Shown here one piece after another: positions 845 to 63,732 of a stretch of DNA of 64,000 nt. Each line of letters starts with the position of its first letter. The first letter of the stretch is position 1. This DNA is from Octopus bimaculoides (Eukaryota), in contig NC_068982.1 of assembly GCF_001194135.2 (NCBI RefSeq), positions 148,175,523-148,239,522 of the forward strand, written 5' to 3'. A program made the translations under genes and the position numbers. Under the pieces are notes generated by a model, which saw nothing but the letters and a program-made list of their open reading frames with translations, made no database searches and was not told the DNA's origin.

Positions 845-964
845 CGGTTGCTATATATCGCACAAAAGATCTCCTTCCTCTTCTTTCACACATGTAATAC
901 GAGCAAGGTCTATTTGAGTTTACTTTTGATCCATATTTCCAGCAAACCCCGTTCATCAAGCAAC
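845..964 (-). CDS. Gene 1 module exon (type A): GCLMNGVCWKYGSKVNSNRPCSYYMCERRGRRSFVRYIAT(G)
   Basis: Acceptor ttcttttaacttacag|GT TGC, donor ACC G|gtaggt. 120 bp, phase 1-1, open frame, 4 Cys; paralogous to exons at 35381, 61700 and 63613. Confidence 0.9.
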
Positions 965-1872
965 CTGTAAGTTAAAAGAAATACGATAGATTTTGTTTAT
1001 ATCAGAAACTGTCTGTGATATATATTGTAATTATAGCACAACAAATGTATATCTTTATCTATCTATCTATCTATCTTTCTGTCTGTCTATATATAGATAT
1101 AAATCTATCTATCTCTCTATAAGATTAAATTTTATTTTAATTGTGTATATTGGTATATGCTAGAGTTTTTTAGAGTGAATTTATTAAGAACATTATCATC
1201 ATTATTATTGTCATGTAAGTGTGTCTTTATTTTAGTCTAGTTTGAATGTTATATTTTTTTTAAATTGTTTTCTACGGCATGATTTCTTTCTTTCTTTCTT
1301 ACGTTCTTTATTTATTTATTTATATATTTATTTTGATGATTATTACTCTAACGGATTTTATAGCGTTCTAAATTGAACAGTAAATGAAATTATAATATAA
1401 AATTTTTAGGTTTAGATTTGAGGAAATTTACCGTTTGCTCGTTCATTGCACATTTGGGATGGAAAGTTGTGTGCCATCTATTACTTTTTCATCCTGTTTT
1501 GTATATTTTCATGGGTCAACTATGAAAATTAGATTTGAATGGTTCCTGTTTTTTTTGGATGTGTATTGCTAATAATAATGACGGTGATGAGAGCAATAAT
1601 AATGGGACCCTGAGGAGATGGAGTATCCTATATTTTATAATATTTTATGATATGTATTAATCATTCTGGATGTTCTATCGAAATGATCTATTTATTTGTT
1701 ATTATTATTGTTATTATTGTTATTGTTGCTGCAATAAAGTATTTTCAACAGATTAATTTTGAGCTCTATTTAAATTTGATATATATTCAAAGACTCAACT
1801 GTGAGTTTTCTGCTAAGATTGTTAACAGATACTATATTTTTTACCAATTTTTTTTGGTTAAAAAAATATATA

Positions 1873-1911
<39 letters not shown>

Positions 1912-1912
<1 letters not shown>

Positions 1913-2830
1913 TAGCAGTGTAACCCGACCTTGTCCGGGTGTGACTTATTACGCCATCTACGATAAGTCTTGCTAGGTGAAAATCAACTAAAAAAGAAAG
2001 CCTTACAACGAAAAAACCCTTGTGAAGTAAATATGTTCATAATTCAAAAGACGATGAAATTAATAGGGAAAGTCTGAAGGCTGTTTTTGTTACATTATTA
2101 AGCGTACGTAAATTTCATCCGTCTAATTGGCTATAGAAATGCTTGTGCAAAACAACTTTTTGCGCTGCCCTGATTATACATAGCAGGAGGTAGGACGGTA
2201 ATTTGTGATGAAGCAATTGCTGGCGAACTGATGCTACACAGTTTTGCCAGAATTCTATCAGATTAGGCAGATGTTAATGCACCATTTTGCATTATGTTCA
2301 AAGTAGCTTCTGGAATGTGGTGAATTGCTGCAGTCTGTTACTGTCATTTTAAACCGGTTGTTTTCTTTCCCCCAGCAAACTCTCTTCTTTGGAGGCATAA
2401 TCTATGTATATATTAAACATAGCAACAAAAGTTATAATAGATGGCAGGGTCGGTAATTTTCACATTTCTGTAATTTTTCAGATTAACATCCGCACGATTA
2501 CCTAACCCTAAAACTCTAAACCTAACCGTAACACCAACCGCAATACTAACCCTAAACCCTATCCCTAACCTTAAAACCCTAACCCTAAAACCGTAACCGT
2601 AACACTAACCCTAATCCTAACCCTAAAACCCTAACCCTGACCCTAAAACCCTAACCCTAACACCCTAGTGAAAATCGTGGTATATTTACCAAACATTGAC
2701 GAACATGAGTTATATTGTAGTTAATGATTGTGTGTACAGGTAGAAGGGAAGAAATATAAAAGTTGCTAGAAACAACAGCTAAATCTCCCTTAAATCACAC
2801 TAAGTAAACGGAATTTTAAAATTTTTTCAT
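1912..2830 (-). mobile_element. Helitron-like element with internal telomere-like repeats
   Basis: Minus strand ends ACCCGGACAAGGTCGGGT hairpin + ACACTG-CTAG, next to a (TA)n tract, which is the typical Helitron 3' end. The 5' boundary is approximate. Confidence 0.55.
2500..2665 (+). repeat. Degenerate (CCCTAA)n telomere-like array
   Basis: Repeated ccctaa/accctaa/ccgtaa units visible directly. Confidence 0.9.
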
Positions 2831-2952
2831 CAATGGAATTTTTTCGATGTGAACTTTCCAGTGCAGTAATTACGCGCTCAACATATAGGAGAGAGAGGGA
2901 GAGAGAGGGAGAGANNNNNNNNNNCTCAACATATAGGAGAGAGAGGGAGAGA

Positions 2953-2998
<46 letters not shown>

Positions 2999-3399
2999 AA
3001 ATGATACATAAACCATAACACTAACACCCTAGTGAAAATCGTGGTATATTTACCAAACATTGACGAACATGAGTTATATTGTAGTGAATGTTTTGTGAGA
3101 GAGAAGAGAGAGAGGAAGAGTGGGGAGAGCTGATTTTTAATTCTCAATCGCAGAATAATGCTAATAATATAGCCTGAACAGGATAAACTATCCCTATTTT
3201 GCAGAGAAAAGTGTAGGTGACTAGCTGTGGACTCGAACTCGAATTAAAAATCACCTCTTTAACTTTCTATAAAAAAAGACATCTCAACGCTTCTAAAAGC
3301 AAGCTTCGCTTGTTTATTTACGTTTGTCGTAATTTGAATTTAACATATGAGAGCGTCTCATAAAGCGAGATTTATATATCTTAATTTGCAGAGAAATTT

Positions 3400-3580
3400 G
3401 TAGTGGGTAGTTTAGTTTAATCGGCAAAAGCATCGTCACATGTAATGACGGGATGTGAGTTCGAGTCCACAGCTAGCCACCTACACTTTTCTCTGCAAAA
3501 TAGGGATAGTTTATCCTGTTCAGGCTATATTATTAGCATTATTCTGCGATTGAGAATTAAAAATCACCTCTTTAACTGCT
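3400..3580 (+). mobile_element. tRNA-derived SINE head, part of which is also present in inverted orientation at 3131-3240
   Basis: A-box-like agtttagtttaatcggcaaaagca and B-box-like gagttcgagtcc. Confidence 0.5.
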
Positions 3581-4079
3581 TAAAAAAAAAATATATATAT
3601 TTACAAGATATAATTTTTGCCTCTTTTTATGGAGACAAAAGGGTTTATAAGACTGCAAAAAAGGAGTGCTCAAATGAAATCGAAACAAAGATAAAAAAAA
3701 ATCATTGATTGGACAACAAACATCAAAGTCGAGTCAACGACTTTATATAAAACCTCACTTTCATACATTTGATCGTATATAAATATTACCATAGCCTTTA
3801 ACACACAAAGAAAACATATACAAAACACTGAAGGTAAAAAAATATATATGCAATTAAAAATACAAATATATAGAACGGCCTATCAAGAATGTGTATACAA
3901 TTGACTAAAAATTCTAAAAGGTATCATGCGACTAAAAATTTAAATAAAATAAAATATCAATCGATTAAAAAATTTCTTACTACAATTAAAAATATATTAA
4001 AACAGTTTATTTCATAAAGATCAAGGAAGGTTGGACTTCAGGAGCGTAAAAAGTTCCACAAAATCAAGTCAAACACACC

Positions 4080-61819: not shown

Positions 61820-62025
61820 CTATGAATTAAAAAGAGACGTAATAAGTTTTGTTTTCTATTATCAACAATGTTCATGAAATACATGTTTGTTCTTGTAACA
61901 CACTTATAAACGATAAATTATCAATTTATCTTCAATGGTGAACATATTTCTATAGCTCGGAATTCATAAATTTCACATGGGCAAATTTCATTATTCAACT
62001 GATAAAACTGAAGTTTTTAACATAC

Positions 62026-62145
62026 CTCTTAATTCCTTTTTCCACTTATATCCAGTAACTGGCGAATACGTACAAGTAAGTCGGATACACGTCCTTAAAT
62101 TTATAATTTTACCACACTCATAGCATCTGCGATTCAATCTACAGC
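62026..62145 (-). CDS. Gene 3 module exon (type C): GCRLNRRCYECGKIINLRTCIRLTCTYSPVTGYKWKKELR(G)
   Basis: aattttttcag|GC TGT ... AGA G|gtatgt; 120 bp, 5 Cys; not shown in the ORF track. Confidence 0.88.
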
Positions 62146-62339
62146 CTGAAAAAATTAATAAGTCAGTTCCTTATAATCACAAAATATTGTTCAGAAAGTA
62201 TAGAAATCTTTTTCAACTACTTGAATTGAAAATATTCAATATTCACTTAAGACTAATTAAGTTACGTATGTTTTATATTTGGATTGCGCTGGTATGTTTC
62301 AGTGCAGCGACAGCCAACTTATTGAAACGATAAACTGTG

Positions 62340-62500
62340 ATCTTCTTCTTCTAGTCAGGTGTCGCACTATGCGATGCTGTGGTCATCACGATGTCTTGCC
62401 ACCTTCTGTTCTCTGCCCCATGGACAGCTGAGAATAAAGACAACCCTGTGGCTGTGATGTCTTTTAGCCAAGAAGTGGGTAGTCTGCCTCTTTTACGTCT
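62340..62500 (-). mobile_element. RTE-like LINE 3' end
   Basis: GRRKRGRLPTSWLKDI...AENRRWQDIV followed by a gaaga tail. Confidence 0.6.
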
Positions 62501-63270
62501 GCCGTATGCCCCATTGACTGTAGTGCCCTTTGCTAGAAAATCCATCATCACAACTCCGCGCTGGTCCCAAAAGATTGTGAGTATTACCTTGCCTGCTGAG
62601 GGTTGGACACGAGCCTTCTTTGCAGGTGGTGAGTTATCATCCTTCCATTACTTCAACTGGACTCTAGCTCCATGATCATAGTGCTGGGTTCATATTTCAT
62701 CCTGTGTGATAAGTCTGCTGAAAAAGTCCTCCTCGTTTTCTTGGTCAAAAGAGTGTGGGAGCAATTGACTCGTACCTGCTTCTGAAAAGGTCCGAGCATC
62801 CAGAGAATCCTTCGTGCAGATAACTTCTGCATGTACAAATCGGCGTGAAGGATGTTTTCCTCCGACCCTACACTCATCTTCACCTTTTAGGCTAGTTGCC
62901 GAATAGTTATGCGGTGATCCTCCAAAATGGCGGCTTCCACTTTATGGATGGTGTCGTCACCAATAGCGGTATGTGGTCGTCTAGAAATAGAAGTTTCCAC
63001 CGATGTCCAACCATATTTGAACTGGCGATGCCAGTGCTTGACTACGTCGTATGATGGTACGTTGTCACCATAGACTTCTTTCCCCTCACTGAAAGTCGCT
63101 TTTGGTGTACCACCTTTCACGTATAAGAGTCTCATCACTTATCTGCATTCAACTGCCTCCATTATAACACCTTAGTCCACTTTAGCAGCTATGAAAGACA
63201 AACGAATACTAGTGGAAAGCTGCAATTTACAATGTGACATTTAGAGACATGTATAATTATATATGTACAA
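62500..63270 (-). mobile_element. Decayed mariner fragment
   Basis: VPSYDVVKHWHRQFKYG...DHRITIRQLA, LSARRILWML and DFLAKGTTVNGAY. Confidence 0.8.
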
Positions 63271-63325
63271 GTTCAGTTTCCTGCAACAACCGGAAATTGG
63301 TCAGAGGCCCAGTTCCCTCGTGTTG

Positions 63326-63419
63326 ACTTCACGGAACTCTACTTCACTCTCACAGATAATGTCAATGTGGAAAAATGCATTGAGATTATTTGTGAGAGTG
63401 AAGTAGAGTTCCGTGAAGT
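63326..63419. repeat. Near-perfect 94-nt hairpin
   Basis: acttcacggaactctacttcactctcacagataatgtcaatg / cattgagattatttgtgagagtgaagtagagttccgtgaagt with a 10-nt loop. Confidence 0.9.
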
Positions 63420-63612
63420 AGGGTTCTGTGTTCAAACAGATTCTGCTATGCACGGCTCTCAACATCCGCTACTAACTATGTTTAAATATGTTTAAATAAC
63501 AGCGATATAACGTTTTATACTTATTTTATCGAAACATATGGAAAACAGTAAATTCTGGCACGTATTATATGATATAAATTTAGAAAAGAAAAAAAAGAAT
63601 ATACAAGCGTAC

Positions 63613-63732
63613 CAGTTACTTCATGCCGCACATAAGATAGACGTCCTTTTCGTTTACAAACATAAACCATGCAAGAAAGTGCCTGTTTTATTCCTTTCCC
63701 ATATGGCTGACAAACTCCATTTATCATACAGC
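63613..63732 (-). CDS. Gene 3 module exon (type A): GCMINGVCQPYGKGIKQALSCMVYVCKRKGRLSYVRHEVT(G)
   Basis: ctttttaattcatag|GC TGT ... ACT G|gtacgc; 120 bp, 4 Cys. Confidence 0.9.

Follow-up and report, generated by a model that had tools for sequence, protein, structure and literature searches.

Fibronectin type I (FN1) modules are usually regarded as a chordate feature and are found in fibronectin and in clotting proteases. The ligands of such arrays, which include fibrin, collagen, heparin and bacterial adhesins, are bound through the addition of a strand to a sheet edge. Another Pfam family, Fn1_2 (PF23003), includes MIG-18 of Caenorhabditis elegans as well as mollusc proteins. MIG-18 is reported to be a secreted basement-membrane protein and a cofactor of the ADAMTS protease MIG-17 (PMC4856095).

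A module that is probably of this general kind is encoded many times over in a stretch of 64,000 nucleotides from the genome of Octopus bimaculoides (contig NC_068982.1, positions 148,175,523 to 148,239,522), the whole of which is referred to here as the window. It holds a minus-strand array of three paralogues, here called genes A, B and C. We consider it likely that they encode secreted, FN1-like, disulfide-chained binding rods that are divergent relatives of the Fn1_2 proteins. An earlier note on this DNA, drawn up from the letters alone, had described three head-to-tail paralogues for an unrecognised, lineage-specific family of secreted, cysteine-rich proteins. We confirm this observation and find the gene models sound. 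Internal signal-peptide and stop exons, the RefSeq models and the orthologues in Octopus sinensis and Octopus vulgaris all agree on three paralogues, and the products are cysteine-rich and, from their signal-peptide-like N-termini, predicted to be secreted. The family is not unrecognised, however, since genes A (LOC106869873) and C (LOC106869870) are already in RefSeq and the orthologues in the other two species are annotated, all of them as 'uncharacterized'. Nor is it lineage-specific. Limpets, snails, mussels and scallops have proteins with long tandem runs of the same four-Cys module, several of these proteins match Fn1_2, and the predicted fold is FN1-like. Thus, the part of the note that spoke of secreted, modular and uncharacterised products stands, and the part that spoke of an unrecognised or lineage-restricted family does not.

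Overall, the octopus genes are a divergent branch of a mollusc-wide FN1-like (Fn1_2-type) module family, with two of the three already in RefSeq. The value of the analysis therefore lies in classification and in a hypothesis, not in discovery. What is new is the unannotated middle gene, an exon that probably lies within an assembly gap, the assignment of a fold to the octopus proteins and the hypothesis of disulfides between modules. A search of the literature found no paper mentioning these octopus loci and nothing relevant on the Lottia identifier given below or on PF23003.

The Module Exons

The module was sought in six frames with the expression GC-x5-C-x10-14-C-x4-C, which matched 12 times, always on the minus strand, against a mean of 0.02 and a maximum of 1 in 100 second-order Markov simulations of the window. 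A hidden Markov model (HMM) of the module, run over the six-frame translation, recovered 13 module exons on the minus strand at 44-64 bits, and the best non-module match in the window was below 11 bits. The additional exon (35381-35500) had been missed by the expression and by the earlier note because its fourth Cys is a Ser. The strand had been given correctly in the note, the count of twelve had not. Similarly, the size range of 117-123 bp is right at its upper end but has to be lowered to 114-123 bp, because exon 49482-49595 measures 114 bp. The statement that AG/GT splice sites and phase 1 are shared holds in every module exon. All 13 are in phase 1 at both ends, with one module per symmetric exon, a polypyrimidine tract and AG directly before the Gly codon, and a donor of the form GT(A/G)NG.

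The other coding exons that had been proposed are also all present. Two signal-peptide exons and two exons with a single Cys, referred to here as cap exons, were located by tblastn with the annotated proteins and by direct reading. In the terminal or 'GC-stop' exons, a strong acceptor is followed by (G)G-Cys-(Ser)-stop, and a search for this pattern gave exactly two, at 47590 and 24193. The splice sites of the signal, cap and terminal exons are all canonical, and when the listed exons are spliced the reading frames are open.

Relationship to the Mollusc Fn1_2 Proteins

A profile of 41 positions (A1) was built from 24 octopus modules and used in an exhaustive search of 1.84e9 representative proteins at E <= 1e-3, which gave 22 matches. 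The named matches outside the octopuses are multi-module secreted proteins of gastropods and bivalves (E 1e-13 to 1e-4) from the genera Lottia, Patella, Lymnaea, Biomphalaria, Plakobranchus, Mytilus, Ylistrum, Argopecten and Pecten, and there is one weak match to a barnacle protein. These mollusc relatives carry from 4 to 29 consecutive modules with the spacing C-x4-7-C-x8-14-C-x4-C. The closest non-octopus relative by score is P0007, a protein of 799 aa from a Logan contig of SRR26897527 (locus L003). It has the octopus-like module borders G-C...C-Y...T-G, and its source might be the transcriptome of another cephalopod or mollusc.

PF23003 was the sole Pfam family that recurred among the relatives. 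It was matched by five of 19 six-module fragments (best E 4e-9) and by five of 34 three-module fragments (best E 9e-7). In UniProt, two Mytilus members bear the name 'abnormal cell migration protein 18-like fibronectin type I domain-containing'. One Mytilus protein, P0029, reaches 30.4 bits against a gathering cutoff of 27, and other relatives score 13-25 bits. The Fn1_2 match of P0029 (residues 254-302) coincides with its match to the octopus module (residues 254-294). Additionally, the octopus module profile matches the Mytilus cluster to which P0029 belongs (P0010) in nine stretches with an E-value of 1e-11, so that the homology to Fn1_2 members is significant. The PF23003 model itself has 70 positions and spans about 1.75 exon-defined modules.

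The classical FN1 model, PF00039, is not among the matches listed for any of the scanned proteins from octopus or other molluscs, whether the cut-off was as strict as E <= 0.01 or as loose as E <= 10. Matches of octopus modules or proteins to DsbD_N, HTH_39, Diedel and DUF7210 were attributed to chance, and nothing in these scans rose above noise. Word-indexed protein searches had poor recall. They missed P0004 and P0005, and the A3 query added only one O. sinensis isoform (P0031). Because of this poor recall, absence in such searches is weak evidence.

Predicted Fold

AlphaFold2 (AF2) models were computed from alignments of the octopus proteins with consecutive-module windows from the mollusc relatives. 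The model of the full-length gene A protein P0001 is all-beta, with a predicted local distance difference test score (pLDDT) of 89 and a predicted TM-score (pTM) of 0.62. For modules 2-4 the values are 96.6 and 0.77, respectively, with five strands in each module. When these two models were compared with the PDB by Foldseek, tandem FN1 modules came first in both searches and were the only family of high probability (0.57-1.00, TM 0.35-0.54). They include 9a3y_B (FNI7-9; probability 1.00 and 0.97), 2cku (2F1-3F1; probability 0.85, TM 0.54, 4.2 Å), 9a3x_B, 3ejh_A, 3gxe_B and 2rkz_D, and the remainder were beta-propeller noise.

According to the models, a module would consist of five beta-strands in the FN1 topology, in which A and B pair as a short hairpin, C follows, and D and E pair as a long hairpin. 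The octopus modules fit the FN1 consensus in their A-B and C-D-E strands, in the Cys at the start of strand A, in the Tyr-x-x-Gly that follows strand B, in the pair of Cys of strand D and in a putative disulfide from strand A to strand D. The assignment of an FN1-like fold, which depends on prediction, is well supported but not proven.

A Proposed Chain of Disulfides Between Modules

The loss of Cys was tallied in 178 aligned modules from non-redundant members of the family. The first Cys (C1) is never lost. The second (C2) is absent only from modules that stand first in a chain, four of them N-terminal and one after a long linker. Two modules are without C3, and what follows these is either no module or a module without a normal C2. 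The last module of the mollusc relatives has the canonical FN1 ending C-x-C...C. Together, this pattern of loss and these endings point to one bond within each module and one bond to the next module.

Specifically, each module would possess one internal disulfide of the FN1 type, which joins the Cys of strand A to a Cys of strand D, and a strand-D Cys (C3 or C4) of module i would bond to the strand-B Cys (C2) of module i+1, giving a covalent daisy chain. The bond between modules would take the place of the second internal disulfide of FN1. From the arrangement of Cys we infer one such disulfide between each pair of adjacent modules. Both ends of a chain of this kind need a partner Cys, which would explain the cap and 'GC-stop' exons. 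The Cys of the cap exon may pair with C2 of module 1, and that of the 'GC-stop' exon may close the last module. From the cap Cys to C1 of module 1 the distance is 17 residues, close to the usual 16 from C4 to the next C1, and in the AF2 model the cap Cys sits inside a beta-hairpin (strands 26-32 and 36-45). The terminal exon places one Cys just after the last E strand. The mature protein of gene C has 26 Cys, which equals one from the cap, 24 from six modules and one from the terminal exon, as 1 + 4n + 1 predicts. The gene B protein as read has 22 Cys.

Because a symmetric phase-1 exon gives one Cys and takes one Cys, duplication or skipping of module exons would keep both the reading frame and the chain. 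A splice-tolerant chain fits the exon-skipping isoforms that are annotated in two species as well as the extra exon of O. bimaculoides. The structural idea is testable, as it predicts that a module gives a Cys to one neighbour and takes a Cys from the other, and that its exon may be duplicated or skipped freely.

Properties of the Products and Alternative Explanations

Each gene would encode a signal peptide and, after it, an all-beta rod of 25-35 kDa that is strongly basic and has 5-7 modules of about 40 residues. The N-termini read MR(C/Y)FLLL(I/S)S(L/F)C...TSQ/FSQ and are signal-peptide-like, with a putative cleavage site before G or V. The mature proteins have pI values of 9.65, 9.11 and 9.08, and in gene A there are 53 K+R versus 15 D+E. 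Between O. bimaculoides and O. sinensis, the modules of gene A are 75% identical, and the flanking introns have 89% identity. The substitutions are concentrated in two regions, one comprising strand A with the A-B loop and the other the D-E turn with strand E. Strand C, the core of strand D and the scaffold of Cys and Gly are conserved.

The positive charge, the putatively rigid rod, the duplication in tandem and the rapid change of exposed strands would best suit an extracellular binding protein at a fast-evolving interface. If it behaves as FN1 arrays do, the rod could bind polyanionic or peptide ligands along exposed sheet edges. Its site of action may be in defence, in mucus or the egg coat, or in venom or saliva. 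The proteins are probably rigid extracellular binding rods, and this, with the site of action, is the least certain part of the interpretation. As a fast-evolving, strongly cationic secreted family, they are reasonable candidates for a part in octopus secretions or immunity.

Several results weigh against reading the array as encoding disulfide-chained relatives of Fn1_2. The dN of 0.140 and dS of 0.090 for the gene A modules in the comparison with O. sinensis give a ratio of 1.55 that is not significantly above 1 (one-sided p = 0.07-0.09), and positive selection is not claimed. The octopus proteins P0001 and P0034, the concatenated modules of the window and the octopus rows of A3 and A4 gave no match to PF23003 even at E = 1-10, so that the link from octopus to Fn1_2 is transitive, by way of the mollusc relatives. 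At the same level, the octopus proteins matched neither PF00039 nor any other Pfam model, and searches of PDB sequences with a single octopus protein and with the A3 profile gave zero matches at E <= 10. No squid, cuttlefish or nautilus members were identified. The Foldseek E-values of 0.002-0.8 are not significant alone and the TM-scores reach only 0.35-0.54, although weak E-values are expected because the modules have only 40 residues. The alignments behind the AF2 models were built from paralogous module windows, and the pairing of the disulfides comes from the bookkeeping of Cys rather than from a structure.

An alternative that shares the same fold is that the proteins are secreted effectors, such as venom or salivary toxins or cationic antimicrobials, and not matrix or adhesive proteins. 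We regard this as possible, though on the unlikely side. The very high positive charge, the tandem array with exon duplication and the dN/dS of about 1.5 in gene A over an invariant Cys scaffold would all be in keeping with it. So would the fusion of the modules in a scallop relative to ApeC, which is a bacterial-pattern-recognition domain. Gene B, however, is much more conserved, its modules having 89% amino acid identity to those of O. sinensis. Moreover, the VWA domain of other relatives suggests a matrix role, and MIG-18 is reported to be a basement-membrane cofactor (PMC4856095). In two proteins of the scallop Ylistrum balloti (P0009 and P0020), the module is joined to VWA in one and to ApeC in the other. 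Such fusions hint at roles of the wider family in both the matrix and immune recognition.

It is also conceivable, but rather doubtful, that the genes represent a cephalopod-specific offshoot of FN1-like modules, daisy-chained, cationic, tuned in length by splicing and under diversifying selection, whose products serve as venom or salivary effectors, as antimicrobials or in the recognition of gametes or of the egg coat. If this were true, both the function and the splice-tolerant chaining of disulfides with dedicated one-Cys cap and stop exons would be undescribed.

The modules could also be truncated VWC or SVWC repeats, like those of chordin or Vago, with a role in growth-factor binding or as antiviral cytokines, but this appears improbable. 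The N-terminal subdomain of VWC is itself FN1-like, and some similarity was detected. SVWC was matched by the gene B modules at E 0.36 and by two of 19 fragments at E of at least 0.025, VWC was matched by the first module of the relative P0021 at E 0.0086, and a VWC-containing NEL protein appeared in Foldseek with a probability of 0.2-0.35. All matches to VWC and SVWC (PF00093 and PF15430) are nevertheless below the Pfam thresholds and much weaker than those to Fn1_2. In addition, the module has four Cys and not 8-10, it lacks the C-terminal CC-x2-C subdomain, and FN1 structures outrank VWC.

A truly new, octopus-specific cysteine-rich fold that is unrelated to known domains, as the unrecognised family of the earlier note might be taken to be, is very improbable. 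The octopus members lack a Pfam or PDB sequence match, and word-based searches returned only Octopus proteins, as this proposal would have it. It is, however, largely refuted by the exhaustive profile search, which finds the module with equal Cys spacing in gastropods and bivalves at E-values down to 1e-13, by the match of these relatives to Fn1_2 and by the confident AF2 models, which resemble tandem FN1 only.

There is little to recommend decayed pseudogene fragments, chance open reading frames (ORFs) or one long gene as explanations. The many assembly gaps, the lack of an annotated O. bimaculoides protein for gene B and the loss of a canonical Cys in one of its modules could be taken that way. 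Yet all 13 module exons are open with canonical splice sites, the 12 motif matches compare with 0.02 by chance, and two signal-peptide exons and two stop exons inside the array divide it. Three genes are also what the RefSeq models and the orthologues in O. sinensis and O. vulgaris fit, and for A and C the explanation is refuted.

Least credible of all is that these are Sushi (CCP) proteins, as the automatic UniProt label 'Sushi domain-containing protein' on gene A isoform X2 (A0A0L8HLT6) would have it and as the four Cys of Sushi modules, which are usually single phase-1 exons, would allow: Pfam finds nothing in P0034 at E <= 0.01 and no Sushi match (PF00084) in P0001 at E <= 1, the module has about 40 residues where Sushi modules have about 60 each, and CCP structures are absent from the best 50 Foldseek matches of both searches, so that the idea is refuted and the UniProt name is unsupported by Pfam, module size or predicted fold.

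Organization of the Three Genes

The features of the array are listed in Table 1.

Table 1. Coding exons of the three genes and the assembly gap in gene B (positions in the window).
Feature	Position	Strand	Remarks
Gene A module exon 1	63613..63732	-	120 bp, phase 1-1; identical to P0001 residues 42-82
Gene A module exon 2	62026..62145	-	120 bp; one extra unpaired Cys (CYEC)
Gene A module exon 3	61700..61819	-	120 bp; paralogue of exon 1, 76% nucleotide identity, similar flanking introns
Gene A module exon 4a	58095..58217	-	123 bp; O. sinensis counterpart absent; 77% nucleotide identity to exon 4b, 263 bp away
Gene A module exon 4b	57712..57831	-	120 bp; cassette exon, in isoform X2 (P0034), skipped in X3 (P0001)
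Gene A module exon 5	52336..52452	-	117 bp; cassette exon, in isoform X3, skipped in X2
Gene A module exon 6	49482..49595	-	114 bp
Gene A terminal exon, coding part	47580..47590	-	(G)GT TGT TCT TAA = Gly-Cys-Ser-stop; matches the P0001 C-terminus
Gene B signal-peptide exon	38350..38410	-	MRYFLLLISFCITYKQATSQ + G; 100% identical to the signal peptide of O. sinensis LOC115232515
Gene B one-Cys cap exon	36355..36417	-	GITKPCQQKIPLGSKYYILEE; 63 bp, phase 1-1
Gene B module exon 1	35381..35500	-	120 bp; 54 bits; missed by the earlier note
Gene B module exon 2	33035..33157	-	123 bp; missing from O. sinensis isoform X3 (P0005)
Gene B module exon 3	30890..31012	-	123 bp; 88% amino acid identity to O. 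sinensis
Gene B module exon 4	29188..29307	-	120 bp
Gene B module exon 5	28156..28275	-	120 bp; gap 238 nt away
Assembly gap	27193..27918	.	726 N; interval expected for the last gene B module from exon order, 28156-24193
Gene B terminal exon, coding part	24186..24193	-	(G)GT TGC TAA = Gly-Cys-stop
Gene C signal-peptide exon	11878..11938	-	
Gene C one-Cys cap exon	6376..6435	-	VTKQCTVNVPFGSSNNFRMK; 60 bp
Gene C module exon 1	845..964	-	120 bp; remaining five module exons up to 52 kb past the left window edge

Gene A, 'uncharacterized' in RefSeq, has its signal and cap exons outside the window, past the right edge. When spliced, its exons reproduce exactly the O. bimaculoides proteins P0001 (isoform X3, A0A0L8HLW9) and P0034 (isoform X2, A0A0L8HLT6). 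Its terminal exon would supply the last Cys of the disulfide chain. The orthologous locus of O. sinensis (L002) is free of gaps and has six module exons in conserved order, so the gaps inside gene A hide no conserved module; O. bimaculoides has seven. Where O. bimaculoides has exons 4a and 4b, O. sinensis has a single exon, and the pair seems to reflect a duplication in the lineage of O. bimaculoides. The nucleotide identities within this pair and between exons 1 and 3, the latter with similar flanking introns, suggest that exons of gene A have been duplicated repeatedly.

Module 2 of gene A reads C-Y-E-C-G, with the second Cys extra, and the O. vulgaris and O. sinensis orthologues read C-Y-R-S-G at this place. 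The extra Cys gives the mature isoform X3 an odd total of 27 Cys. The odd Cys could remain a free thiol or could serve in dimerisation.

The orthologues of gene B, the middle gene, are LOC115232515 (P0005) in O. sinensis and CAI9717959 (P0006) in O. vulgaris. An O. bimaculoides protein for gene B was not found in a search aimed at it, by word-indexed searching of poor recall. Its readable exons are all intact. A 5' untranslated exon lies upstream of the signal-peptide exon, because the ATG sits 7 nt after the acceptor site. Compared with O. sinensis P0005, Cys 4 of module 1 has changed to Ser and the Ser 7 residues downstream has changed to Cys (CMTYISERRGHGCY versus CMTYVCERRGHGSF). In what looks like a compensating change, the Cys has apparently shifted to the adjacent strand within the D-E hairpin.

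Nowhere in the readable sequence of the window is there a counterpart of the module that comes last in the O. sinensis orthologue (GCILNNKCYPPGW...IIRC; GCILNNKCYPPGWQHQESSCISFKCQSSYKEYYWEKIIR). This absence and the order of the exons both point to the gap at 27193-27918, which probably hides the last module exon of gene B, the orthologue of O. sinensis GCILNNKCYPPGWQHQESSCISFKCQSSYKEYYWEKIIR.

Gene C (P0003) is likewise 'uncharacterized' in RefSeq and has a total span of 64.6 kb. Its first three coding exons lie in the window and match P0003 exactly, and the gene runs about 52 kb past the left edge.

In O. vulgaris the accessions of the A and B orthologues follow one another (CAI9717957-59), so the tandem layout is conserved. 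O. sinensis LOC115222431 has isoforms of 6, 5 and 4 modules, and the differences are whole exons. Since isoforms X2 and X3 of O. bimaculoides, like X1, X2 and X4 of O. sinensis, differ by whole modules, module exons are annotated cassette exons in two species.

The window, which protein matches assign to O. bimaculoides, is eukaryotic and AT-rich in composition and contains 12 runs of N. Positions 1-21938 are 100% identical, including the gaps, to chromosome CM046602.1 of GCA_001194135.2, so over this part the same gaps are present in the chromosome-level assembly. All gaps of the window are intronic or intergenic, and no exon abuts a gap, the minimum distance being 238 nt. Several runs (among them 8059-8376, 9589-9634, 17109-17839, 39654-39682, 46374-46796, 48397-48765 and 56929-57272) have simple-repeat flanks, and ORF translations beside them show stretches of IYIYIY, HTHTHT, VCVCVC or SLSLSL. 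These gaps are probably unassembled microsatellites. Introns and spacers also contain ORFs of medium length, at 8050-8694 (-), 20483-21007 (+), 21692-22111 (+) and 34015-34422 (+). They resemble decayed transposase fragments with HTH-like N-terminal parts, and in Pfam they gave only sub-threshold matches to HTH_32 and HTH_10.

Comparison With Known Systems

The VWC and SVWC domains of chordin and Vago resemble the octopus module in their N-terminal half, which corresponds to the module start C...G..Y..G......C....C, and they give weak, sub-threshold Pfam matches. In contrast, the second subdomain and the 4-6 further Cys are absent from the octopus module, and the scores are far below threshold.

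Canonical FN1 (PF00039), as in the N-terminal and gelatin-binding regions of fibronectin and in the finger of tissue plasminogen activator (tPA), shares with the octopus module a size of about 40-45 residues and an arrangement in tandem, rod-like arrays. The octopus module differs in having C-x4-C rather than C-x-C in strand D and an extra Cys, C2, in strand B. Its strand E is without Cys except at the very C-terminus, and the second disulfide would lie between modules.

Like the Fn1_2 members, which comprise MIG-18 and mollusc proteins, the octopus proteins are predicted to be secreted and all-beta and are made of tandem four-Cys modules. Unlike them, they are short, with 5-7 modules, and extremely basic, and their genes form a tandem cluster. 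We know of no functional link of the octopus proteins to ADAMTS.

Further counterparts are the long mollusc proteins, all of them uncharacterised. They include Lottia LOTGIDRAFT_230689, the Patella 'prestalk protein' XP_050391668, a Mytilus protein of 511 aa and two Ylistrum proteins, LOC132543642, which combines VWA with 29 consecutive modules, and LOC132563432, which combines modules with ApeC (apextrin C-terminal). They possess the same module, the same Cys spacing and a signal peptide, and their first module is without C2. The octopus locus offers an intron-exon-resolved example of divergent FN1-like modules in molluscs. In the long proteins the first module is complete but for C2, and the last is of the canonical FN1-like C-x-C...C type, whereas the octopus proteins start with a one-Cys cap and end with 'GC-stop'.

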